NCBI RefSeq assembly: GCF_964204645.1
Contig: NC_134035.1
Location: forward strand, 9,146,451 to 9,210,450
DNA: 64,000 bases
Source: Tubulanus polymorphus
Taxonomy: Eukaryota; Animalia; Nemertea
Reading direction: 5' to 3'
In this document: positions 4,728 through 43,368 of the stretch, in pieces
Layout: the number at the start of each line of letters is the position of its first letter
Position numbering within the stretch: the first letter of the stretch is position 1
Notes under the pieces: generated by a model
Told to the model about the DNA's origin: nothing
The model's input: the letters and a program-made list of their open reading frames with translations, nothing else
Databases searched by the model: none
Position numbers and translations under genes: made by a program

Positions 4728-5876
4728 TCATTGGCCGAGTTGTTTTCGAGATTTGGCTGGTGATAGCACACACATATCTTGAACAGCTCTTTTAAACGTG
4801 TTGTTCGTCAGGAAGTATATGAAAAAATTGCCGCAAGAATCGAATACGGTTAAACCGATCGCTATTTTTCTCAAGACCATCGTCGACTCGTATTGACTGA
4901 GACTTTTGAAGAAGCGCACTCGTATATAGCCTTTGTAATAAAGCCGATCGAAGAACGTGAACGACTCGCATGCGATGTAGTTCAGAACTATGGCGAAGGC
5001 CATTTGCAGCGCTCGTTGTTCCTTCGCGGTGGTGGGAGTCGATTTGGAAACTATGAAACGGCGCTTCAAACGACTGACGATCATTGCCGTGATTAAAACC
5101 ACGTTAATGACGATCAATTTAAACATCGGTACTATCGCCGTCAAGTAACTGGAACCTGTATTGTCGGAAAACCTCCACCAAGCTGACACAATCGGGTTGA
5201 CGGATCCCTCTTTATGTTTAACAAACGTAGCCAAACCCGCCGTACACGACACCGGTCGAAGGCTCCAGGCTGGTATGAAATTCGGCATGTAAACGAGAAG
5301 TGAGAAAACGTTTAGAATGAATAGTATCGCGTTGACGGTTTTTCGTGTCCAAAATAGACGATGTTTCAACGGGAAAAGTACGACGACTAAACGCTCGAAA
5401 CTGATAAGCACAACGGTCCAATTCCTGATCAGTAAAAACACGCGATAGAACCCGATAAACGGATAAATGAATTCCCAGCCGTAGTACCAATCATCGCGCC
5501 GAATTATGATATCACCGAGTGCGTTGAATATGTGAATCGTTCTCAACGGAAACATGAAAAATACGGAAACCGAGTATAGTATATCATAAGCGGCGAGAAC
5601 TTTGATCAGGTAATAAACCGCATTATTCATTCGACGGAGAATTATCAAAGTGAATACGTTTAGGACGATTCCAGAAAACGAAGTCGGTCCGTACAATCCC
5701 AGATACAAATAGACGCTGAATTCGTATTCCCATTTGACGGTTCGAGCGCGCCATTCATCGCATTCGAGACGAGTCGTCAGATTTATCATCTTCGATGGGT
5801 ATATCACGCATAACGTGTAACTATATCGTTTCTCTTTTGTAGGTATCGCGATAATATTGGATTCAGCCGAATACAT
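4728..5876 (-). CDS. Intronless class A (rhodopsin-like) GPCR, FMRFamide-receptor-like/Srw-type orphan receptor; start at ATG 5876 or ATG 5789
   Basis: Seven hydrophobic segments. TM1 GIVLN, TM2 LAAYD, TM3 WTVVLISFERLVVVLFPL (ERL for DRY), TM7 DSCGNFFIYFL followed by an FKRA helix 8. The ORF-track start at 5885 is TTG. Confidence 0.9.
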   Translation of the reverse strand: MYSAESNIIAIPTKEKRYSYTLCVIYPSKMINLTTRLECDEWRARTVKWEYEFSVYLYLGLYGPTSFSGIVLNVFTLIILRRMNNAVYYLIKVLAAYDILYSVSVFFMFPLRTIHIFNALGDIIIRRDDWYYGWEFIYPFIGFYRVFLLIRNWTVVLISFERLVVVLFPLKHRLFWTRKTVNAILFILNVFSLLVYMPNFIPAWSLRPVSCTAGLATFVKHKEGSVNPIVSAWWRFSDNTGSSYLTAIVPMFKLIVINVVLITAMIVSRLKRRFIVSKSTPTTAKEQRALQMAFAIVLNYIACESFTFFDRLYYKGYIRVRFFKSLSQYESTMVLRKIAIGLTVFDSCGNFFIYFLTNNTFKRAVQDMCVLSPAKSRKQLGQ

Positions 5877-6046
5877 GACACGCAAACTTGCGTGAAAAAC
5901 ATGGAAACATTTCTATCAACATATCTACTATCTTATTACGCCTGATTCGTGTTGGAGATATAGAATTGCCATTTGAAATATTTATTTGAATTAGGTTCAT
6001 AAATTTTAGATTTTAAAAACTACCGTCAACATTATTTTGCATTCTA

Positions 6047-8928: not shown

Positions 8929-11085
8929 CTACAGGTCTTCGTCGTCATCGCCATCGCCCTGTTCTAGATACGAATCGGTCATCATGAGTAACCGTCCTTC
9001 GGTAACTTCGTCTTTCAATATACTAGACACCGGTTTGCTGAATTTGCGTCGGAAACAGACGAATAACGCGGTATAGACGATAAGCATCACGATGGATACA
9101 AGCGCCGCGTGCAGACCAAACGCGGCGACGGCGAATCTGACGTTCGCGGGATCGGAACGATTGTAAACTGGGTTCACATCAGTACCTACAATATTCAACC
9201 GGATCGAACATATGAAAAACTATTGTAGAATTTGGCAACAAATTGGTGGAAATTGATTGATTGTTTGTTTTCAAGCTTATATCTGCTGCTATCTCTAATT
9301 TTGTTGACAAAACGTACTCATGAACATAAACACAAGTTAAATTAACCTAATCATAGAAAAAAATATCAAAATATACAAATGACAATAGTTACACTGTTAA
9401 GTCTCCCCGATTCTAATGATTAATGTATACACAGAATATTGTTATAAGTTTTTAGAAAGTTTTCTGATGAAAAGAGGTTTACATATATTCACCTGGAAAT
9501 CCATTCGGTTTATACAAAACGAATGCGACATGCATGAACCAACTGCCGGTCAGTATGATCAGGAAGGTGCGCCCGACAGCGGGTAGAATACCGTTCCGAT
9601 ATACGTTCTCTACCAGGAGGCAAAACGCCGCCCCGATCAGAACGGGTGCTGGTAGGAGTTGAACGACCGCTTGTAACGTCTCGACGCTACCGGTCGGAGT
9701 GTAGGCGTGATGGAGCGACCCGAGACCGAGCCATAGGAAAGCTAGAACTAGCGTAAGGTAATCGATTCCGTCGGGATACGCGACCCATTCTGACGTGGTC
9801 AACAGATCGACGAAGCCATGTACGACGAATAGGCTGAATACTGATGTAGCCTGCAGTTGATCGAGGCTAGTATAATTGCCGTTTTTCACGAAAGTCCATT
9901 TTGCACTAGAGCAACTCGCAAGCAATCCTGAAGATAAATGTTTAATACAGGCATTACACGAAAACCGTATATAATACATACATCCATTCACATAGACCAT
10001 AATACAATGAGTTTTTCAAAACGTCATTTCACCTCGTTTGATATTAATGGTTTTTCAACTATACATTTCGCATTAGATGAACATTAAATTTTTAAGACGT
10101 TTGTATTCATTCGAGTACATAACATAAGACTTACAGGAAATACATATATATTTTCAATTTCGAATACCGGGACCTCTAACGATATACGTACCGATAAATG
10201 GAAATGCTATTTTCAGAGTTTGTTCGATTGGTAACTGTCGTTTCTTGATGTTACTCGGAAAACTGAGTCGATTCGTGTAAGGATTTGTGCAATAGATCGA
10301 CTGCAAAAACAACAATATACGGAGAAATGTCCGGACACCACTTAACGCGAGATGCTGCTTATGAAAAACTGTTAGCTTCCATTGGGGGAAAAGATAACGC
10401 CCGGTAATGAACAAGTCAAAGTTGAACATTTTAGATCCTTATTTCTTACATTTTAGATAATAAGAACCCACTATTAATATTAACAGATTAAAAGTATTAA
10501 AACCGATAATTTATTGAATAAAAAAAAATATATTAAATGACACGACGTTTCGATCTCAACCTAGAGATCTTCTAGAAAATATTGTTGACATGTGTCGGCT
10601 GTAGCCCATGTTGCCTTCATCAGAACAAAATTAGAACTAAGTCAAAGACCATATGAGTAACTGACGTAGAATTGAGATGAGAAGAATTTGACAGAATAAT
10701 TGAACAAGGTATGATAAAGCGTTTAGAAAATTGACAAGGCATTTGAAGATCCACTATTAGTAAGCTGTTTGTTCAGGGAAGGATTGTTTGATTTTAGGAA
10801 TATAGTGCTTCATAATTGTTCTGATGAAAGCAACAAGGATTACAGCCGAAACATGTCAACATGGTTCACAGCCGAAACATGTCAACACTATTATTGCATG
10901 TATATGCAAATATAGCAAAAAAAGCATCTAAAATGTTCGCCTTGGCGTTTTGTTTACAAAAGATAACTTCATCGCTTTATGACGTAACTTACTTCGAAAT
11001 ATCGCTTTAATATGTTAAGAAACCACCACAGTCCAACGAGAATAAAATATACACTTAGATTGATATAGCCGTGAAATGAATCCAT
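8929..11085 (-). CDS. TMEM45: Transmembrane protein 45 (DUF716)-like, 4 exons (11085-10993, 10300-10192, 9927-9493, 9185-8929), ~297 aa
   Basis: Spliced ORF of 894 nt with GT-AG introns. MDSFHGY..FILVGLWW, GFVDLL, GIDYL, RTFLIILTGSWFMHVAFVLY and ANVRF..FGLH are collinear with TMEM45A/B motifs ([38 protein letters not shown]..CWH). Confidence 0.88.
10583..10627 (-). ncRNA. Inverted partner hammerhead motif (core GAAA mutated to GACA)
   Basis: Minus strand UGUU CUGAUGA A GGC..GCC GACAC AUGUC AACA, an inverted repeat of 10817-10861. Confidence 0.55.
10817..10861 (+). ncRNA. Minimal hammerhead ribozyme motif in TMEM45 intron 1
   Basis: UGUU CUGAUGA A AGC..loop..GCC GAA ACAUGU C AACA: stem I UGUU/AACA, palindromic stem III, one mismatch in stem II. 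Confidence 0.65.
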
Positions 11086-22314: not shown

Positions 22315-23646
22315 TTAAGCTCTCAGACTATGAAACAAATCGATGTCATAAAGACACGACTATTTCTGTCACCGACAAATATATTAGTCGCAATCTTTAC
22401 ATCTATTGTATTGTAAATCGTGAATATTGCTAAAAACTGCTGCCTGGAAAACAAATGAAAATAATTTTTATGTTATAAAGGTTATTATCAAAATGACGGA
22501 TAGCCGGCGTCGTCCATATGGCTTTATCAATCCTAGACAAACAATATATAATCATAAGCAATGTACACAATTCGAGACAGATAGTTTAAGTCGCGATCAC
22601 ACTTTTTGGCCCGGGCCAAATTGGCCCAGAACAGCTGTTCACACGGCTATATATTTAAGCATAGGATTTGAAAACGAGATTTTTGTGCAATGGTATCGAA
22701 TAAAAACAGATAGACAATGAAATTTCTATAAAACAACGGCACCGATACTATTCTCATCTACGTAGATCGGCGCATGAATCGAGACGCAGTTTATGCACCC
22801 CACCCGTGTGAACCTATACACCGCGTTACTTGGTATTCGGCGCTTGTAACGTGAGAGCGCGCGCGCGCAGTTTTTTAACTTCATTTTCAATCGCAATATG
22901 AATCATTAGACGGCGAAGTCGTAATTGGCCGGTGAAATGAAATTTCCATACATCAAGCTATTTGTAACAACGGCAAGGCACTTCGACAACAAACACAATA
23001 TTCACCTAATCCAATTGCAATATCATTATTCCCATTCGCAACGGCGAAAATTCGATGTACCGTAAATTCAATATTATTGTTCTATCGCAAAGAAAGCAGT
23101 TGAAAAATGAGGTGTGGATAGAACGGAATTAATTATATATGAAAGACTGGCGAGGTGTTTACGCATTGGTTACATCGTATATCAAGTGTCTGTGTCGAAG
23201 AGATCAAATGTGCTTTGTGGTGGTGAGTGCGGCGAAGATAGGGTTACTTGAATTTCTATTTTTTTTGGAAAATGTTCAAAGTCAGAAAACAACTACCCAA
23301 GAATCAAGTTTGTTATACGCGATGAATAGCGTCGTTATTGATATGTTTGTATCTATCCGATAGTAAGTCGCGAAATTGTAAATACCGATAAAACCCATTA
23401 AAAAGAAAATAGATTCAGTCGCAATCAGGACAATCCAACTTACAATAACCACGGTATAATCCAACAATACAGAAAACACACTGTATATTGTCGGATTTTA
23501 ACGTCGTTTCAACAATCCAACTTATGTTTTCTTAACGGCATCTTCTTTATCAAGCCTAATACCATGATTTATTCAACACTTAGCTATATTTTGGTTAATC
23601 TTGTTGTTCACGTGTATTCTTTAGAGACTGTCGTGGTTTATATATA

Positions 23647-26600
23647 ATGGGATACAACGTCACCATGATCCGCGTGGTAAGTTTCATTCTGACCGCTATT
23701 GTCTGCGTGACGTCATCTTCGCAGTTCGACGGCGACTTTTCGGAAGGACAGCGGTAAGTGAAAAGGTTCATCCTCCGTAACTGTGATATGTGATATACAA
23801 TGAGATGCAAACGCACTTTCAACAAATTGAAAAAAATAAAAAACGAAATTTATCAATCAAGACAATGGTCTCTAGAGAGGGTCTGAAACGTTGTGTGTTT
23901 TAAATTCCATCTTAATTTTTGGTAAATAGATTTAGTTTCTAATCTTTTATATTTGTTTAAATTAGGTTCTAATCTTGCAATCCCTTCTCCAAGCCTGAAT
24001 GTGGCCATTCTACTATATAAAACACCAGGGTGGATCCAGTGACAACTGGTGAGGGTAGTACGACTAAAAAAGGGCATAATCCGCATAATTTTCGCGACGG
24101 TAGCACGTTCCTACCGTCTGAATCACATACGTACCGCCTGCACATCCGTAGTTAACATCTAAAACAAAATTTCCATCCTGTCAATAGTCGAGTGTCAGTT
24201 TATTCGTCACACGAGTATCCACTTTATGCACGTCTTTTGCAGGGAACACAAACGTTTATCGTTGAAAAGACAAGACTTGACAGCGTTGAAAAAAATCGTC
24301 GATGACATCGACTCGGATTTCGCTACTGTTCAGTAAGTTATGACTCTGTTCGATTGATATTCCGTGAGACCAATAAATCATGTGCTGTTTGAGTGATTCA
24401 CTCTGTCTTCTATACATCATATCTTATTTCTTGCGTTGCAGAAAATGATTTTCATTTCGTTTATTTTATATGCAGTTAGAAAAAAATGAAAGCGTATGTT
24501 TCGATTTCATTTCGTTTGCCTGCAAAATGCGAATCAATGCGATCATGCGAATAAATTTTGCTCGTGTAAAATCTGAAATCTTTTAGAAATTGAATGTTTG
24601 AATCGATCTATAGGACAAAAGCATGCCTGCTTAACGGCTTAGACGTGTCCGAATGTCCCAGCGCCTCTCTGGCTGAAAACCAGAGCCTGGCGAAAGCTAA
24701 CGGCGAAAAACTACGTGATGATGATTCTAGGTATACACAACATGATCGGTAGTTGTCTGTGAAATACCTCTTGAACCCTAGTTCTGCTACCCCCCTTCTT
24801 AGACAAGTAGATTCGAATTACTGCTTCGGCTGTTTTTAACCGAAAACAGCGACCAAATCCTGCTTGCAATAAGTCGCTTTCACTACACTTGCCGACCGCG
24901 TCCACTGCGAACTACGAGTAGAATAGTTTTATTCACTGAACTTTCCCCATCCCTCACGCTCTATATAAATATGTAAAACAGATCCAGCCCTTCAACGCCC
25001 TCCCTCGGCAAGTTTTCAAACCTGGTGGAATCGGTACAGTATCCCATCTGAGGGAGGATGGCGCTTTAAACAAAGATTTCCACTATGCGAATTTTGTTTC
25101 GACGATTATCATCAAAACCTCGCAAAGTTTTATTAGGACATGATATGTAAATAGATTTGAAGGGCTGGTTCTTACTATGCACAAAGCACCACCACAAATT
25201 TGCACTCATATTATACGCGCTTAGTTGATCGGCTTAGAAAGTCGCGTCGCCAGCTGCGCGCGCATGCTTGATATCGTCACTTCCGGTCAGCCTATATATG
25301 AGGAATAAACGACCGTTTTCGGTAGCGTTTTGTTTTTTTGTATGGGCGCTAACGTTAACAGGCTTTTCTAGCTTTGCTAAGCCTGTGTAAATTGTATCTA
25401 TTTCTATACAAACAAGTTTTTATTTGAATTTGAATTGACCGCAATTTTCGGTCGCAGCATTATCAATTTGATACACTGACGAAATGTGATGAACTGTGAA
25501 ATATCTGCACCGATGAAAAGTGTCTAATATTATGACAGAATAAAAACGATGTAAGAAACCGGAAGTGACGATTGCGCATTTTGACGCTTCGTGCGATGTG
25601 AATTATGCACAGATTTTTGATGTCGTTGTCGTTTGTTGTTGTGTTGCGTATAGGAAGAAATGGGACCCGTCGTGTTCAATAGGAGCCGGGATGCCGGGTT
25701 ATGACTGTCGTCTCGATCAGATCAACGGTAATCAGGATATCGTCGATTGGTTAGGCAACGACGACTTGAGCCCCGGAAAACGTAGCGCATCGGCCACGAT
25801 AGGAACGATACCCGAGCAAACATTTTCACCAAAGTCAAACTCCCTCCAGTAAGTAGAGAGACAACGCTTAAACCGATTCGAATGTTTACATATGAAAAGC
25901 TAGGTAAGTTCTCACATCTCGGACTGGCGGTATCATTTCTGCGAGATGATATCTTTGTATACTTGTATAATATATGAATTTAGGCAAAAGAAACACGAAG
26001 GACCAAAATGAAAACCGAAGCGTATAAAATCCCACTATAGTTGAATAAATTCATTTTAGACTGAAGAAGAGTGGTAGAAACCACCCGAAATATCATTGAT
26101 ATTTTAAAGCTCATTTGGTGTTATACTCCATGAAATAACCGGCCGCGGTTTTTGCTGATCACATCATTTCTCACTGAGCAGTTGGCTCAAAAATGGGAAG
26201 TTTGATCATAACCATTGAATATATAGAATCGTGTCCGTCAAAAACACATCTTCCATTTTTGTTCTTATGACACGAGAAACGGGACGATATTCGGATTATC
26301 TGATTTGTTTTGTCGAGTCTTTTGTGAATTTTCTTTTCTTTCCTAAATCTTTCGAAATCGCAACTGTCTCACCGTCAGGGGATTGCAGAGCGATCTCCGA
26401 CCAACGTGGAAGCGAACTCGATACGTCGTGTTATGTAGTGATCGGCTCCTAGGAGAGGTAAACACTCAACTACCAGCTTTGAGAAATATCGTTTCCTCGC
26501 TGAAATCCTGACTCTGGCGAATTCGAAGAATTTAAACCTATCGTTAGGCAGTAATATAAGCCGATAATAGCGAAGTAATAGCCAAGTGTTTTGTGCGCTT

Positions 26601-28079
26601 CTGAACGTTTTGTGTTTGAAACTCGTTCAGTAGTTTTTGGTCCCAGCGGTGTTGCGATCAAGATATTCTACTGGAAGATCTTCGGTCGTAAATGGAAACG
26701 TGTTTTATTCTGTGCTGGAGTGATTAATAATTTAAATGTTCCACGCTGATTTCTAAATGAATATGATGTAAAGACTGCAATCTTTCCGCACTGACCATAG
26801 CGTGGACGCTTCGCTTGAAGCAAGCTCCATAACTGGGGAATTTGACACGCAATCTCTCGGAAATTGCATATTGGAACTCGATTATGTAGCCAATGACGCT
26901 CTTGCTCTATCTGAAATATGCCTTGGTCTTTTCTCCCGGACCGCTGCCTTCCAATTCTCCTAGATCCGCCCTGCAATAACATATCAGTTCACTTTTCTAG
27001 CGGTTTTGAAACATTCCAAGAATTACTTCACTTGATCGTGCCAAATATATACACACATTATACAGCCAAAGTTTCAAAGTTTCAAAGTTTTCAAAGCTGT
27101 TTTTTGATTGATATACATTAGTCAGTCGCTTTGGTAGATTTGGGGGTTTGTACAGTAGTTAGTTTCAGCAATGTTGTAACAGATCATAATAGTAAACGTA
27201 TGTCTACCTCTGCGTTGTATTATGCACATCCAAGCACTTTGCACTTAGAAAAAACTTCGTTCCGGCGAAGCTGATGTATTTCGACATTCTTTTCGAAAAA
27301 TCACGTCGAAATCGATTACGTAAATCGAATCAACCTAATTCTCGGCAATCTGCCATTCAATTTCATTACAAATTTGAACATTTGTACGTCGTGACGGATA
27401 CTAACATACGAGCAAAACAATTTTCTTCCAGAGCCATTCAGGACTTAACCAGAAAAAGAGTCGGACTCCAATTCTTGAAAAAATTGATTGAAGAACAAGA
27501 CAGGCAACTCCATGTCGCGCAGTAAGTTTAGCACATAAGCAGATAAAAACCCACGTATCTACAGATTGAAAGAATTTAAAAACAAGAATTTATTGATTCA
27601 ATCTAAGATATATAGAATACACGACGTTTCGATCTCATCCTAGAGATCATCGTCAGGTGTGAAACGTCGAAACGTCGAAACGTCGTGTATTCTATATATT
27701 CTAGATTAAATAAATAAATTCTTGTTTTTAAATTCTTTCAATCTGTAGATAGTGGGTTTTTATCTTATTATCCGTTCACCACGTTTGAGTGTGGTTATCG
27801 TTCCATTAGCACATAGGCATTAAGTCTTGTTACGTCATTAATTAATCGTCTAATTTCTATTTTCTACTATGAAAAAAGTCTAAATTGTTTTGTTTCATTC
27901 GCAGAAAGAGAAATTGTTACGTGAACCTCGGAGGCCATTGCCAGGCAGAAACGGCGTACGCAATGGCCAATCAAATACGATATTTGAACAGTGCCGATAG
28001 TCCTGGACGCAAGAGAAGATCTCTGTCAGCTTTCATCGCTAAACGACTGTCATCAGCTTTAGCCAATGAACAGTCATGA
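23647..28079 (+). CDS. Calcitonin-type neuropeptide precursor (188 aa if all exons are used), exons 23647-23753, 24243-24332, 25654-25848, 27905-28079, encoding two calcitonin-like peptides
   Basis: Signal-peptide-like N-terminus MGYNVTMIRVVSFILTAIVCVTSS. All three introns are gtaagt..ag and phase 2. Peptides: KK-WDPSCSIGAGMPGYDCRLDQINGNQDIVDWLGNDDLSP-GKR and KR-NCYVNLGGHCQAETAYAMANQIRYLNSADSP-GRKRR. An N-terminal Cys pair plus C-terminal Pro-amide is the calcitonin family signature. Confidence 0.92.
27541..27765. mobile_element. Fold-back element with ~90-bp inverted arms around the hammerhead (inverted Penelope-like pLTR remnant)
   Basis: Left arm agataaaaacccac...cacgacgtttcga (27541-27632) is the near-perfect reverse complement of tcgaaacgtcgtg...gtgggtttttatct (~27675-27765). 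A tandem (GAAACGTC)x3 sits at the junction. Confidence 0.75.
27619..27660 (-). ncRNA. Minimal type I hammerhead ribozyme (Penelope-like-element type), apparently intact
   Basis: Minus strand reads ACAC CUGACGA U GAUCUC uaggau GAGAUC GAA ACGU C GUGU. Core boxes CUGANGA and GAAA are present, with a 6-bp stem II, 4-bp stem I, palindromic ACGU stem III and GUC cleavage triplet. Confidence 0.8.
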
Positions 28080-29133
28080 GTGTAAGTAGTCTGTGCTAAA
28101 CGTAACCTATATTTGCACCGGAGACCATTGACCCCCGAGACCAGGACCCGGTTTTACGGTGGTTTTGAGTTGGTTACTAATTGAAATCAGTAGCCATTTC
28201 AAAACTGAGGCCTCAAATCATCACAACCCGCGACCATGGAAAAACGATAATATCAAGCTCGATTACAATAGTCTCACAATATATAGTACGAAAAAGTCCA
28301 AGAACCCACTTATTCCGATTTTATTAGCCACAGTCAGCTGGAATGAGGAAACATACACATAAACCTAGTTCATAAACAAAGGATCTGTTAATCTTTAATA
28401 TTCTCTCAACAAGCTCGATACCACAAAGCCAAAACCGATTTACTAATATCAATTCGTTTCATTTAGATTCTATGGACCTACCTACTTTTTCATTATTTGA
28501 AATGTTTGATAGTACTAACAGATTCACGTTACGCACCTATTTTGCAGGGCTGTTTCACGACCGCAGTGGAGAAGAGACTGTCTGAATTTAACCAACCGAT
28601 ACGATACAGTCATTTGTAGGATCACGCGAATTTTTAACTAATATCTCGTCGACCCGTCCTCATTTTACAATAACTGATGAATCTTTCTAAAACGTTCGCT
28701 TTTAACGATATAAGATTGACGATTTATGTAGATTTACCCCCAATAAACTGGAATCGAAGAAAAATATTGCCCTTCCCTCAAATTTATCAACCTAAAATTC
28801 GTGCAGTTATTTTTGAGAAGTCCGACGAGTATCCGAAACGTTTCACCGTGTAATTTAGTGACAGATGGTTTTCATTAACAAATAAAGATAAAGTTGAATA
28901 ATTAAAAGACGTGTTTGTGTTCTTGTCCGTGTCGATTTTTTTATCTCGAATCTCACCTCGACTTCACTCGTGACCACATGAATATAAAAAAACAACATGA
29001 AATATTGGAGTAAAAATGGAGTGGTCATTTATTGCCGTATAAAATGTGTATAAAACCTTGTAAAATAGTAAAACCGTCGAATAAAATCTGAATTATGAAT
29101 ATTCGGTAGCACGTCTAAATATCTGAATGTTTA

Positions 29134-32100: not shown

Positions 32101-34575
32101 ATCAATGGTTAAAACAACATCAATAAAGTGATGTAGTCAAATGCCGATACTCGCCTAATACAAATGCAAATACTATCCAATGAGAAATAGTCATGTAATT
32201 GTAACTTGCTGTTCTGAATTTCATCCGATAAACATGGCCGATAACTTCATGCCACGATTCACCGGACTGTACGTCCTCTGTATTGAATGACATTACACCC
32301 AGCAATACGAGGAATACCGCATTGAAGAATGTGTGATTCAGAAATTTAATCACCGGTGACCTCAGAAAATCGATCAGACACATCTCTTTAGCCTAAAACA
32401 GGTAAAACGTAAAACTTCTTTTTAAAACTTTCAACAAGAAGATCACTAACAACGCAACGCATCTCTGCAAATACGATTCGAATGTGGAGAAAATTAAATT
32501 GTTCACTAGATTACTTAAAGCATTTGTACTTACGTCATTAAAAAAGTATCCTTGAAGTTGCATCAAACCTTTGACCATCTTTTTACGTGCAAATGTTTTG
32601 ACAATTCTCATAAACAGTAAACTAATCACGGAGAACAAGAGAACCGGAACCCAGGCGTAAATAACGCGTATAGACCCGTAAAACGACGAACTAAGGTAAT
32701 TCTGACAAATTGGATGAGCTATAAACTGAAAAACAATAAGAGATAACAAGGTCCTATGATAACTCAGAGCTACTGTACACTTTCACCCAGTCCTGAGAAT
32801 TGCCAGTTCCTGGAGCTCCGTATACTGCCTATACTAAAGAGCTCGCGTGAACCATATACCACTGACACTAAGCGATATACCACTGACACTAAGGTTCTCA
32901 GTGAACTGTACACTGAGCTGGACCAAGAGCTTCAAATTTGTGAGGAATAAGTGAAATCGATATCCATACTTACAGACTTCGCATTTTCGGCGAAGGCTCT
33001 GTTGACGACTGCTGGATATCTGGCATCATCTTCGTGGACATTCGCCGCTTTATCTGCATCGGAATGAAGGATATCTTCAACTTCTTTCAGGCTGCTGCAG
33101 TGGTCGAGCATACTACATGCAAATTCTTCGCATTGATTTACCAGTTCCAGAAACTCCGACTGAAAAATGGTACGTACATAAATATGAGTTTCAAAAATGT
33201 TCACATTCGTGTATTCATGGAAACGCGTTCACCTTGAATTCTTTTCGTTCTTCGACATATCGCAGAATCTTAGAGCGAATATCCAATGCAGTACCTATCG
33301 GATCTCTTTGTGTAAGACTCAGATACGCCGGACTTGCCTGCGCTCGCATCAATTCTAAGTAGTGTTTTTGTTTCTTTAATACATCGCTCATAGGCAATTG
33401 CTCGAGTAGTTGAAAGCGTTTAGCGTCGTCTCCTTCGATATTATAGACGAGTTGGACCATTAACAAGTTGTTTTCGCGAGCTGCTATTGTCATTGCTGTG
33501 CGCTGTATTTCAGACTTATCCATCGACTTGTACTTAGGATGAGTTAGAATGAATTTTACCACAATTGCATTATTGCTTTGGATGGCAAACTCGATGCAGT
33601 CTAGTATATGATTCACGCTTAGATAGCGGCCTTCCAGCACTCTTTCTAATATGTCAATGGCGCCGTGTTCGATAGCGTAAAATAGCGCTGGTTTTGCAAA
33701 GATTGTTCCCTGGCTGTACATGAAACATTTTATTATTCCCTCATACGCCATCTCTCTCAGGTCGTCTTGAACGAGAAAATCGAAAAGTTTCAGATTGTAC
33801 TTAAATGCATCAATATCTATATTGAAGATCGCTCGTCTTAATGCTTCACATAGTTTGCTGATACAAGTTCTGTCAGACGGGTCGATGCAGTCATCAGGCA
33901 CGTCGAAAACGACCTGAAAAAAAAACAAAGGACACGTCTGTCATCATCGCTGAAACCAATAGCCGCTCATCATTGCTTGGAGAGTTTCTGGGGGCTAAAT
34001 CAGCCCCGCCACTGTTATTGGAGCGGTCTGGAAATAAAACGATTCAGATATTTCTAAATGAGCTGGAAAACTTAAAACAGCAAGGCTGGAATTCACCGAA
34101 GCATTTTTGCCATCGTTCAAGACAGTGATGTTCGCATACATGTGCTTACTATCAGAACATGGCATCATCTTGCGTGCGGACGACAAGCGTTTTTACGAAC
34201 AAAAGAAAACTTAATCGGCGGTGAGGGCATGTTTATCTCCGTGACTAAAGCATTGATCATGTAGGATACTTTGGCCATTTCGAAGAAAGTCAGTGATGGT
34301 CGGGATAGTTGCTTTCGTCCGCGGACAACGTTAGTCTATCCAGCGTTTATGAGATAATCGGTATGCCTTGGTGAATTCCTGCCAAACCCATTACTCACGT
34401 CATCACCAGAGAGCCCTTCGTCGCCTACATAACTAAATAAGTTCTGATAAGATGTTGAGCTACGGAGGGTCTCGCACGTTCGCTCCACGTCCATATCACA
34501 ACTGGCTACATTCTGAGAAGATGTTGATGATCTACGGACAACTAGAGACTCGTACGTCCGTTCTACGTCGTCCAT
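29134..34575 (-). CDS. TRPC-family (TRP/TRPL/TRP-gamma-like) cation channel, ~945 aa, 12 exons: 34575-34399, 33913-33233, 33159-32974, 32725-32534, 32392-32155, 31813-31508, 31269-31082, 30936-30815, 30573-30470, 30125-29989, 29723-29529, 29445-29134
   Basis: Ankyrin-like repeats (ALFYAIEHG, TAMTIAARENN), ASPAYLSL, FIAHPICQ, SPVIKF, LGPLQISASRM, pore TLFWSLFG, S6 VIVLLNMLIAMM and TRP box EWKFAR. Exon lengths sum to 2838 nt in frame. Exon 1 is the least certain. Confidence 0.93.
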
Positions 34576-39946: not shown

Positions 39947-40915
39947 TCAACCGATGCGCATGAACGACGCTCTTTTATCGTTTTCTACGCGTCGTTCGTC
40001 GTCGTCGTCGTCGGCCAAACGTTTGCCGATTCGCATAAACGACCCGCGTTTGCCGTCGGCGTCGGCAAAATTCTTTTTGCCTATGCGCATAAAACTGCCG
40101 CGTTTGCCGCTGTCTTCCGAAGTCAAGTCGTCGATGTCGGGAAGTTGCTCGTGTTGTTTCTTACCAATTCGCATGAACATCGCTTTCTTCTCCTGGCTCT
40201 CTTCTTCGTCGTCGGCGGCCGACGATTTTTTGCCGATGCGCATGAACGAGCTCGACCCGCGCTTATCGCCATTCTCGTCGTTACGACCGATTCTCATGAA
40301 ACTCGCGCGCTTGTCGGCGCCGCTTTTACCGATGCGCATGAAACTTGGCCTTTTTGGTAATTCTTCGTCGAAATCTTTCCTGCCAATGCGCATGAAGCTG
40401 GCTCGCTTATCATTCATCAGGTTTGATTTCTTGCCAATTCGCATAAAACTTGCCCGCTTATCGTCGTCGAAATCTTTCTTGCCGATTCGCATGAAACTGG
40501 CTCGCTTCAGCGCTGCCGGGTAAATCGGCCGTTTTCCTATACGCATGAACGACGGTCGCTTGTACGAAATTCGTTTCCCTATACGCATAAATGAAGCTCG
40601 ACCAATGCGCATAAACGCCGGCCTAGCTGTCCTTAGATAACTCGGAACGCTATAAGAGTCATCGTCTTCTTCCTCGTCACCAGTTTGTGAACGTCCGATG
40701 CGCATGAAACTGCTCGGTCTGCCAATCCGCATAAAGGACCCGCGTTTTTTCTCGTCCAAACTCTCACAAATGTCCACGCAACGCTCTAATTCGATTTGCA
40801 AGTTTGTATTTTCGCACTCTTCCCGGCAGTCTAATTGTTGTGATTGAGCGCACTTATTGATGACGATTAACACGAAAATCACGCTCCAATGGAAAACGAT
40901 ACCGCGAATCTTCAT
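39947..40915 (-). CDS. FxRIamide-family neuropeptide precursor (15 xFMRIamide copies), 322 aa, single coding exon preceded by an acceptor at 40942/40943
   Basis: Signal peptide MKIRGIVFHWSVIFVLIVINKCAQS. Fifteen FMRIG motifs are flanked by KR/KK/R sites and acidic spacers, with Gly as amide donor. The true start is ATG 40915; the ORF-track extension to 41092 runs into the intron. Confidence 0.96.
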   Translation of the reverse strand: MKIRGIVFHWSVIFVLIVINKCAQSQQLDCREECENTNLQIELERCVDICESLDEKKRGSFMRIGRPSSFMRIGRSQTGDEEEDDDSYSVPSYLRTARPAFMRIGRASFMRIGKRISYKRPSFMRIGKRPIYPAALKRASFMRIGKKDFDDDKRASFMRIGKKSNLMNDKRASFMRIGRKDFDEELPKRPSFMRIGKSGADKRASFMRIGRNDENGDKRGSSSFMRIGKKSSAADDEEESQEKKAMFMRIGKKQHEQLPDIDDLTSEDSGKRGSFMRIGKKNFADADGKRGSFMRIGKRLADDDDDERRVENDKRASFMRIG

Positions 40916-43368
40916 TTTCGTGACTAATTTGATTTTTGAGATCTGGAAAATATAAGAAATAGATAGATATAGCATAAATTCTAATGCGGAGTCAGCATTT
41001 GCAGTCATACAGGGGAGAGTGTCTAATCCCCGCTGAATTGTCAAGTTACCCTGGCATTTAACGGAATAAAGAAAAATGCTAAACTGATACATAAAAAAGT
41101 TTAATTCATAAGCTTGTTCTCTTAATTTCTATGAACCTTATGAGGAGCTTTCTTTCGGGGGGTGCCCTTTCATATGATATGCCCTATTTGGGGATTGCAC
41201 CCTTCTCTGAATCAAACCCTCGATCCGCCCCTGTTTTACAAATCAACTTCCTTGAAGTATGTGTACGAATGTAACCGTTTATTTTTGTTCTGTTTGTCGT
41301 TTTAATCTTTATCGTTTTATCTTTATTGCGTTCCTCACTGGAAAGTAATTTTTAGCATTATCGGTCAATAAAGTTTGATTTGATTTGATTCAGCCTATCC
41401 AAGTATCATAATTTTTGATCGTGACTTCGAAACCGCACCCATCGTGACGTTTCACCTACATAATGTTAGATCACCCTTGAGTTACAGAGACGCCCAATAA
41501 CTGCAGAATGATCTCAGCTGACCTTTGCATCAAATTCAAAGCGTAACTTCGTTTATGTGTAGGTTCAAATGAGACTAAAATTAAAGGTGAATGTCAACAC
41601 AATACACACTGTCCACTTCCCACGCCGTCATCTTAGGTTTCCTGGTCGGCTTTCTGTAAGCAGATCAAACTGGTGACAAAGCCGTTTGCCCAGTTACGAA
41701 ATAAAGAGATATCCTTGACAAAAGAACTCTATTTCTTGGAAAAATCTGTTTTTCACATAAGACATAAGATTTAGACATGATTTAATTAAATCATTGACGT
41801 ATCTGCGATGTCATAGCTATGTGCGAACACGTGAACAAACCGGCGTATTCGAAGCTGAATCACTTACACAGTATACAAGTGATAATTTTGGAAAAAAAAT
41901 TTTGAATTTGTCAACATCGACAACATTGACATTGAGAATGGAACTTGGGAATTAGTCATCAGAAACCAGTATTTGCAATAAGCGAAAAAGCGTCACTTCG
42001 ACTCGATAGATCCCATCATTAGTTCTTCGTTCTGTCACAAGTTATTATGGACAGTCATTTAACTTCAATATATAAGATGTTTTGAAGTGCAATAAAAACA
42101 CGACTGAACTGAATCGGAAAACGACGATAAATCACGAAATATTGCAATAAACTATTTATAATCGGCGTTTATGTGAAGTTATGCGTGCATGTTACAGTGT
42201 TGGGCCACATTCGCCATGACGGGACAGAACGGATGACAGATTTCATGAGCTATTTATCTTTCCCATCGGAATTTGATGATGTATGACGAGTGTCCGTGGG
42301 ATGGACGTGCGAAACAAGACCCGCTGCAGCTCGCTGTATGTATCTCCGTGTAAGAAGACGCTATCGAAATTATCTTTTATCTCGGCCTCTCTGCGGGACT
42401 GTGAGGGCCATCGAGTTGTATATTTTTTTTATAATTTCTGTTTATTTTACCCATTCGTATCAATTAACGTTGAACTTGGCGCTGCCGCTCCGTTGACACG
42501 ATTCCAGGGTAAAAATACTTCTGTACGGCTTTCCAGTTGTCGGTATGTTTTGCCCGCAAAGCTGTATGTTCAGTGACATAGATTCAAAACCATAATGCTG
42601 GTATCAAAGTCTTTGCAAATTTATAACTGCATCTTGAGATATCATATTTATACTACCGCTGAAAGATATACTAAGTTTTATTCGTTCATTCTATCTTATC
42701 GTGCATTTTGTATTGCGCTGTAATGAGCGAAAATTATCCCAACAATCCCGCCCAAAATGGCGCCTAGAAACTGGAAACTGCTTTACTAATGATGTCTCGA
42801 TGCTAGTCTCGATCCAGAACACAGGGTTGAGAAATAGACAGTACAATTGTATTTTTAAATGAATATATAATTTTTCATTATCCAGATATTTGAATGAGTA
42901 TAGCTATTTATTTCAATAAAGATGTTGCGATTATATTGGACGTTCTTATAAAGATATGGTACACGGAAGGAAATATAACAAGATATATGGACTGGGCCAG
43001 TTTACCTAAGTCTATATATCTTTCCTTATCCAATCTCCATCCATTTGGCTAAAAACTCGTGAACAATAATAAGAAAATCCAGAAGTGTAACAGCCCTGAC
43101 CAAAAAATTAAAAAAAGAAATCTTCACACGTTATCAGGTATCCCCCCCCCCAAGCAGTATTAACCTAACCATCAATTAGTCTAGTATTTCCATTTCTATC
43201 TCCATCCCTGTATAGATGAATGCAATTGCAGCATGTAGCGCCTTCATTGAGTATGCGCGGAGATATTGTTACCACTATTTCTCTTCTTCATTATTTCTTT
43301 TCCCTTTCCTTCTTTACTTTTGTTTTACTTCTTTTTTCTCTTTTTATACTTGGCCGCAAAGTGTTCAA

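Follow-up and report, generated by a model that had tools for sequence, protein, structure and literature searches.

Calcitonin in the ribbon worm Tubulanus polymorphus: exon organisation of the precursor gene, predicted peptides and a probable alternative exon

Calcitonin-type precursors with two peptides in molluscs and three in Capitella have been described with a layout that recurs in the palaeonemertean Tubulanus polymorphus (Cardoso 2020, PMC7200681). In bivalves (CALCI and CALCII of Mytilus and Crassostrea; Cardoso et al. 2020, PMC7200681) these precursors combine two peptides, as the original prediction had noted for this group, with a Cys ring, a Pro-amide and a conserved spacer that includes RK[KR], and so does the T. 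polymorphus one; furthermore, Mytilus CALCIIa has in common with peptide A of the ribbon worm a 10-residue ring with GGM/AGM (PMC7200681), and the Crassostrea peptide Cragi-CT is credited to Schwartz et al. 2019, as cited in PMC7200681. Molluscs possess two calcitonin genes, whereas a whole-genome copy count returned one locus for the precursor in T. polymorphus. The annelid precursors (Capitella teleta CapteG222382, Paralvinella palmiformis KAK2144101.1) follow the order spacer 1, peptide, peptide, spacer 2, peptide, with all three peptides in one protein: a 10-residue-ring peptide (with DWL..PGKR) resembles peptide A, another (NLGGHC...YLNS..SPGR[KR]RR) resembles peptide B, and the position of our candidate exon Ey is taken by an amidated calcitonin of canonical type (C-x9-C...SPGKKR), whereas T. 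polymorphus has at this position a non-amidated, unalignable exon outside the main model. The vertebrate CALCA gene is similar to that of T. polymorphus in that related peptides (with a ring and a C-terminal amide) lie on separate exons and are subject to a splicing choice, but the vertebrate choice falls on 3' terminal exons that each have their own poly(A) site, whereas in the ribbon worm gene it would lie between internal phase-2 cassettes, with peptide B always retained. In nemerteans, Thiel et al. 2021 (PMC8557429) reported calcitonin precursors, T. polymorphus included with three isoforms, and listed for this species DH31 as a separate precursor and both calcitonin/DH31-type receptor clusters. 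The gene is thus already known, from the nemertean precursor and splice forms published in 2021 (PMC8557429) as well as from a RefSeq model.

The locus studied here, contained in a 64 kb stretch of T. polymorphus DNA (hereafter the window), is the calcitonin-type neuropeptide precursor gene of this ribbon worm. It corresponds to RefSeq LOC141912827, the product of which (XP_074660343.1, 218 aa, T. polymorphus) bears the name 'uncharacterized protein LOC141912827' and carries no isoform label; the expectation that annotation would leave the gene uncharacterised was therefore correct, whereas its description as hidden was not, given that a complete 218-aa model already exists. Five exons tile this protein residue for residue (Table 1), with split codons for R, Q, Q and Q and a TGA stop codon at 28077-28079. 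The four exons originally predicted are all in place (AG acceptors, GTAAGT donors, translations as described) and their splice holds in frame, all junctions being of phase 2; however, the proposed junction 25848/27905 is broken in the public model by a 90-nt exon at 27432-27521. As every junction is of phase 2, skipping or swapping a peptide exon, whichever it is, leaves the frame intact. We are highly confident of a single-copy calcitonin gene with a five-exon main transcript, two Pro-amide ring peptides and a probable alternative exon at 24614-24730, the proposed exon usage being taken from the public model and from related species. The whole 64 kb window gave no Rfam match at the gathering threshold. 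A neighbouring hairpin (27541-27765), considered as a possible hammerhead ribozyme, was not supported as such (no Rfam hammerhead family at E<=1) and belongs to a dispersed repeat of which there are at least 40 full-length copies.

Table 1. Coding exons and candidate alternative exon of the T. polymorphus calcitonin-type precursor gene (positions in the window; in letter sequences a slash marks the splice site).
Feature	Position	Strand	Residues of XP_074660343.1	Phase and remarks
Coding exon 1: start codon, leader, start of acidic propeptide	23647..23753	+	1-35	ends CG/GTAAGT, phase 2
Coding exon 2, 90 nt, spacer 1 (EHKRLSLKRQDLTALKKIVDDIDSDFATV)	24243..24332	+	37-65	phase 2/2
Candidate alternative exon (Ey), 117 nt	24614..24730	+		phase 2/2; tatag/G ... 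AG/GTATAC; outside public 218-aa model
Coding exon 3: KK, peptide A, GKR, linker	25654..25848	+	67-130	phase 2/2
Coding exon 4, 90 nt, spacer 2 (AIQDLTRKRVGLQFLKKLIEEQDRQLHVA)	27432..27521	+	132-160	phase 2/2
Last coding exon: KR, peptide B, GRKRR, C-terminal tail, stop	27905..28079	+	162-218	

Exons were used as queries one at a time, and comparisons over the full length drew on the public proteins XP_074660343.1 and Lineus longissimus X1 and X2. With the last exon as query, phmmer returned 60 representatives at E<=0.001, and the 59 other than XP_074660343.1 (E 4.8e-14 to 1e-4) include calcitonin-2 of Urechis unicinctus and models from Owenia, Paralvinella, Mya, Liolophura and Lineus. Moreover, HMMs of other-species calcitonins (built without XP_074660343.1) match, among the 2945 six-frame fragments of the 64 kb window, only the exons of peptide A (E 1.6e-8) and peptide B (E 1e-6), the next best value being 0.22; these matches are far beyond chance and, together with the Cys rings and Pro-Gly-basic ends, they bear out the assignment to lophotrochozoan calcitonin-type precursors. 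Alignment with other lophotrochozoan calcitonins, proposed earlier as a check, revealed strong homology with the predicted mature peptides as the best-conserved blocks (invariant: R140, K162, R163, C165, N-L-G 168-170, C173, Y-L-N 187-189 and S-P-G-R 193-196). The precursor of Lineus longissimus (LOC135492019 X1, XP_064634164.1), a heteronemertean with a shorter linker, has equal block order and junction positions and is 45% identical over its whole length, with 23/38 identical residues in peptide A and 21/31 in peptide B against 6/35 in the leader and 4/24 in the linker. A reading of the open reading frames as chance features of non-coding DNA, or as a pseudogene from which no hormone is made, could invoke the lack of any Pfam match (exons at E<=10, XP_074660343.1 at E<=0.01, PF00214 Calc_CGRP_IAPP included). 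The PF00214 profile is centred on vertebrate calcitonin, CGRP and amylin, so that the miss may bear on that family only. This reading is effectively refuted by five intact exons with consensus splice sites, by intact processing sites, by a conservation that, within Palaeonemertea and Heteronemertea and beyond them, peaks in the predicted mature peptides, and by the published transcript of a close relative (PMC8557429).

The published T. polymorphus isoforms (comp32409_c0_seq1-3; PMC8557429) display an identical five-block architecture. Compared by eye, as were all supplementary isoform sequences of PMC8557429 and PMC7200681, they differ from the genome at 2/38 positions in peptide A and 3/31 in peptide B, and are strongly different in leader, propeptide, linker and tail. 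Given these differences, the published transcriptome and the assembly seem to represent different lineages that go by a single name, or else the propeptides evolve very fast.

The predicted leader is composed of MGYNVTMIR (n-region with Arg9), a 12-residue uncharged hydrophobic core (VVSFILTAIVCV; h-region) and TSSS (c-region); it lines up with the N-terminal ends of the relatives' precursors, which are likewise hydrophobic, and, judged by inspection only, would qualify as an N-terminal signal peptide. Annelid and mollusc precursors have a conserved ..TRKGL.ALK..V..IDGDL block, with which spacer 1 aligns. The exon at 27432-27521 is, on our reading of the sequences, a paralogue of exon 2: the ungapped similarity of the two was equalled in 22/100000 shuffles, and the spacer duplication rests on this ungapped permutation test (BLASTP between the two exons returned no alignment). 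The gene is accordingly built from a duplicated module, namely a 90-nt spacer exon followed by a peptide exon. The 30 residues of exon 27432-27521, missing from the four-exon model, are kept in every relative aligned, the spacer-2 block being found in 8/8 precursors (R140 does not vary in either alignment, nor does K139 in the closer set). Besides its place in XP_074660343.1, this exon has a strong acceptor (ttttcttccag) and a strong donor (GTAAGT), and every published Tubulanus isoform that extends to peptide B contains AIQDLTRKR... (PMC8557429). The four-exon transcript (25848 joined to 27905) is thus an improbable main or regular product, even though skipping of 27432-27521 would keep the frame (the split codon being CAA (Q) both ways), the phase-2 exons make cassette skipping mechanically possible, and whole exons are missing in the models of some relatives (e.g. 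one without the peptide-A block).

Within the five-exon precursor, peptide A (25661-25774, 38 aa, WDPSC..C..LSP) is preceded by KK67-68, has 10 residues between the cysteines of its ring (Cys73-Cys84) and is followed by GKR at 25775-25783, while peptide B (27912-28004, 31 aa, NC..C..DSP) is preceded by KR162-163 (K162 and R163 invariant), has 7 residues between its cysteines (Cys165-Cys173) and is followed by GRKRR at 28005-28019. Both peptides have a C-terminal Pro and the corresponding amidation signal (LSP-GKR and DSP-GRKRR, with S193-P194-G195-R196 invariant in the alignment), and their ring sizes agree with those of the corresponding peptides of relatives; peptides A and B did not align with each other in BLASTP. 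An identity as DH31 (no Cys ring, GGP/GP-amide end) is excluded by the Cys pair and SP-amide signals present in both peptides, in keeping with the distinction from Cys-free DH31 that had been drawn at the outset. Convertase cleavage, carboxypeptidase trimming and amidation by peptidylglycine alpha-amidating monooxygenase form the established prohormone pathway. In the ribbon worm, the leader would route the precursor to the secretory pathway, cleavage by prohormone convertases would occur at KK67-68, GKR107-109, KR162-163 and GRKRR195-199, the basic residues would be trimmed by carboxypeptidase, the exposed Gly would be converted by the monooxygenase into a C-terminal amide and an N-terminal disulfide ring would be closed in each peptide, the predicted products being the 38-aa peptide A and the 31-aa peptide B with a Pro-amide at both C-termini. 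Bivalve calcitonin receptors have been tested pharmacologically; we know of no calcitonin receptor assay for nemerteans. The presumed targets are the family-B calcitonin/DH31-type GPCRs of T. polymorphus (found by Thiel et al. 2021, PMC8557429), and we infer processing, amidation and receptor activity alike from the sequence.

The two-peptide precursor of the original prediction stands as far as the presence of peptides A and B is concerned, but an alternative ring-peptide exon at 24614-24730 had been overlooked. This exon encodes TKAC-x9-C..., without a Pro-Gly-basic end and without a dibasic site in front, and its product would be a Cys-ring segment devoid of an amidation signal. It has the position and phase, the xKxC-x9-C start and the split Arg codon of the swap exon of Lineus longissimus X2, the sole difference between Lineus X1 and X2 being that the peptide-A exon is replaced by one that encodes a ring only (SKIC-x9-C, without Pro-Gly); beyond xKxC-x9-C the alternative exons of the two species have little in common (a 9-residue match only, E 0.017 in one comparison). 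The published Tubulanus isoform seq2 (PMC8557429), compared by eye, likewise carries at that position a C-x9-C exon that replaces peptide A and is followed by R-AIQDLTRKR, as the 24730/27432 junction predicts. We consider that exon 24614-24730 probably serves, as in relatives, as an alternative to the peptide-A exon. A substantial chance, somewhat short of even, is nevertheless given to the reading in which it never enters a transcript, as a decayed relic or a chance ORF, the 218-aa two-peptide precursor being the sole product: the exon is missing from the only public model, its donor (GTATAC) is weak, its acceptor tract is interrupted by purines, and it combines the lack of a preceding dibasic site and of a Pro-Gly-basic end with a lack of HMM similarity to calcitonin peptides. 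Such a relic would, however, have to have kept an open frame of phase 2/2 in the correct intron, a defining pattern that occurs once in the 128 kb translated window and in 2/5000 resampled introns, and an xKxC-x9-C start and AG/N Arg junction common to expressed exons (Lineus X2 and the published Tubulanus and Cerebratulus transcripts).

On the preferred reading of 24614-24730 as an alternative exon, we raise tentatively, and with more doubt than conviction, the possibility of an ancient lophotrochozoan exon switch kept in nemerteans, in which mutually exclusive phase-2 cassettes for the middle peptide ('a' with a 9-residue and 'b' with a 10-residue ring) would lie between the duplicated spacers, and in which the signals for cleavage and amidation would have disappeared from the 'a' exon while its ring was kept throughout the history of the phylum. 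In support of such a switch are the exon order, which is that of the annelid three-peptide precursors, the Lineus X1/X2 isoforms and the retention of the exon in the T. polymorphus genome, as well as two Phoronis ijimai sequences that have common flanks but an a-type or a b-type peptide (PMC8557429); against it is the absence of detectable sequence similarity between the alternative exon and a-type peptides. Neither this exon (HMM E 24-54) nor the alternative exon of Lineus is recognisable as an a-type calcitonin.

LOC141912827 can now be named a calcitonin-type neuropeptide precursor. In the literature searched we found no genomic exon map of this gene; the one given here (duplicated 90-nt spacer exons, one phase-2 exon per peptide and a probable alternative ring-only exon) explains the isoforms that were listed without comment in the 2021 neuropeptidome (PMC8557429). 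The current understanding of calcitonin evolution is left unchanged by the T. polymorphus gene and the practical gains from its model are modest; T. polymorphus being one of the few species for which calcitonin and DH31 are reported along with both receptor clusters, an accurate model of the precursor is useful for ligand-receptor pairing. If the exon switch were true, the ring-only exon would encode a calcitonin-gene product that is new and non-amidated, and its use a functional parallel to the CT/CGRP splicing of vertebrates.

The gene proposed here is a real calcitonin-type gene, correctly recognised in the original prediction and unnamed in the annotation. Inspection of positions 23500-28200, with each proposed exon translated separately, recovered all four predicted exons, joined in phase 2 throughout. 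Exon 1 encodes a leader carrying a 12-residue hydrophobic core, exon 3 encodes KK, a 38-aa peptide (peptide A: cysteines at 5 and 16, ending LSP) and GKR, and the last exon encodes KR, a 31-aa peptide (peptide B: cysteines at 2 and 10, ending DSP) and GRKRR. The donors read through into an in-frame stop (xxG/GTAAGT giving ..G TAA) because a consensus GTAAGT donor sits in phase 2; we therefore reject the idea of a special device, the stop being an automatic outcome of that arrangement. At the 5' end (23636-23667), TATATATA adjoins the ATG annotated as the start; 18 nt further downstream follows another ATG in the same frame (Met7), both being candidate initiators.

Features of the calcitonin gene and its surroundings in window coordinates (a slash marks the exon border; exons 1-3 and the last exon by direct reading and translation)
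Feature	Position	Strand	Details
Exon 1	23647-23753	+	ATG to CG/GTAAGT
Exon 2 (spacer 1)	24243-24332	+	cag/G to CA/GTAAGT
Alternative exon candidate	24614-24730	+	117 nt, phase 2/2; absent from original prediction
Exon 3 (peptide A)	25654-25848	+	tag/G to CA/GTAAGT
Spacer-2 exon	27432-27521	+	90 nt, phase 2/2, exon 2's length; absent from original prediction
Last exon (peptide B)	27905-28079	+	cag/A to TGA stop
Hairpin element	27535-27771		last intron of calcitonin gene; 87-nt arms, 91% complementary
FMRI-amide (FxRIamide-type) multi-copy neuropeptide precursor	39947-41092	-	single 381-aa open frame, hydrophobic leader
Possible orphan GPCR gene	4728-5885	-	intronless 385-aa ORF; PF00001 E 5.6e-6, under gathering score
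TRPC-type channel gene, N-terminal part (looks like)	33215-33928	-	ankyrin repeats, then TRP_2, E 7.5e-8
DUF716-matching ORF	9479-10000	-	E 1.4e-9

A phmmer search with the last exon against 1.84 billion representatives returned 60 proteins at E<=0.001, headed by a 100% identical 218-aa protein of the same species, a palaeonemertean ribbon worm (XP_074660343.1, 'uncharacterized protein LOC141912827'). Five unjoined exon translations tile this protein by script (residues 1-35, 37-65, 67-130, 132-160 and 162-218), the four gaps being the split codons CGG, CAG, CAA and CAA, so that the public model comprises five exons. Its fourth block is the spacer-2 exon, which the predicted junction 25848/27905 skips, the reading frame being nevertheless kept. 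A genome search found one locus only for either peptide exon. Contrary to what had been claimed, the gene is thus not hidden, since a public record exists; its having been left uncharacterised is borne out, as that record carries no calcitonin name.

Among the matches, relatives with a name or a placement include calcitonin-2 of Urechis unicinctus and LOC135492019 of Lineus longissimus, together with models of Owenia fusiformis, Paralvinella palmiformis, Mya arenaria and Liolophura sinensis. The alignment has a common block order (leader, spacer 1, ring peptide ending PG[KR], linker, spacer 2, KR, peptide B), in which R140 of spacer 2 is invariant and preceded by a conserved Lys, and the block after KR reads NLGGHC..E.A....YLNS..SPGR.RR. 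HMMs built from other species' peptides (the Tubulanus protein excluded) and run against the full set of 2945 six-frame fragments from the window matched the two peptide exons only (E 1.6e-8 and 1e-6; next best 0.22). In the comparison with Lineus isoform X1, identity is highest in the two predicted mature peptides (peptide A 23/38, peptide B 21/31; leader 6/35, linker 4/24), as would be expected under selection on bioactive peptides. Pfam gave no match for the exons or the protein; its calcitonin profile is vertebrate-centred. The calcitonin-type identity is upheld by the block alignment, the HMM matches and the intact processing motifs.

The exons are intact and bordered by consensus splice sites, the processing motifs are unbroken, the encoded protein is homologous to calcitonin precursors, and conservation peaks in the predicted mature peptides. 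By the established prohormone pathway, the signal peptide would be cleaved off, convertases would cut at KK, GKR, KR and GRKRR, carboxypeptidase would trim the ends, the Gly-extended Pro would be amidated, and the disulfide rings would close. The products would presumably act on family-B calcitonin/DH31-type GPCRs, and, more speculatively, the conserved RKR of spacer 2 may be an extra cleavage site.

Comparable precursors have been described: bivalves possess two-peptide CALCI and CALCII precursors and Capitella a three-peptide one (Cardoso et al. 2020, PMC7200681), the latter matching the Tubulanus gene by eye block for block, spacer 2 included. Calcitonin has been reported in nemerteans, T. 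polymorphus being listed with '1 (3 isoforms)' alongside DH31 and both calcitonin/DH31-type receptor clusters (Thiel et al. 2021, PMC8557429); the gene is therefore already known, and neither hidden nor new. Compared by eye, isoform seq1 of that study has the same five blocks as the genome's precursor and nearly identical mature peptides (2 and 3 differences), whereas leader and propeptide differ strongly, a hint that the transcriptome and genome animals belong to separate lineages sharing one name. The partial isoform seq3 diverges after ...DQING and continues KKEKS (PMC8557429); the genome counterpart of this point (25724-25732, peptide-A exon) reads AAC GGT AAT, with a GT within. No exon of the gene yielded this continuation, so seq3 may stem either from an assembly artefact or from a splice specific to one lineage.

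A candidate exon with xKxC-x9-C at its start and AG/GT at its end sits in the intron that separates spacer 1 from the peptide-A exon. Its structural pattern (AG acceptor, phase 2, xKxC-x9-C, 25-60 open codons, phase-2 GT donor) occurs once across both strands of the window, and 2 of 5000 versions of the intron resampled at first order contained it. Compared with the other exons, the candidate has weaker splice sites, a frequent trait of regulated exons, and it is absent from the only RefSeq model. Joined to the spacer-2 exon, it would yield an Arg codon followed by AIQDL, exactly the junction of the published isoform seq2, in which a short C-x9-C segment without Pro-Gly replaces peptide A and is followed by R-AIQDLTRKR (PMC8557429). 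Likewise, the Lineus isoforms X1 and X2 differ solely where peptide A of X1 gives way to SKIC-x9-C...GNR in X2. The two species' alternative exons are slightly similar (9-residue match, E 0.017 in a single comparison), and HMMs found in neither any resemblance to the canonical amidated calcitonins that hold this position in annelid three-peptide precursors. The uniqueness and rarity of the pattern, the seq2 junction and the Lineus counterpart lead us to rate it a probable, though far from certain, alternative exon.

Exon 2 and the spacer-2 exon, equal in length and phase (90 nt, 2/2), share 8 of 29 residues ungapped (L.KR..L..LKK included), a BLOSUM62 score reached by 22 of 100000 shuffles. 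From this length, phase and similarity, the gene appears to have arisen by tandem duplication of a unit made up of one spacer exon and one peptide exon.

The hairpin in the last intron is repeated across many contigs (full-length copies of 81-91% identity number at least 40; 1381 first-look candidates), and this dispersal makes it MITE-like; Rfam hammerhead families gave no hit at E<=1, and only weak miRNA-hairpin look-alikes appeared. The FMRI-amide precursor (Pfam FARP match, E 0.003), some 12 kb away from the calcitonin gene, carries xSFMRIG or xMFMRIG 16 times; K or R follows almost every copy, and the last copy ends the frame. The possible GPCR has a weak rhodopsin-family 7TM match, and the TRPC-like ORF is long and exon-like.

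Taken together, the four predicted exons and their frame stand, and the predicted model lacked a constitutive exon as well as a likely alternative one. The remaining interest lies in the genomic exon map and in the ring-only alternative exon, which, judging from the sequences compared, appears to be conserved across Nemertea.
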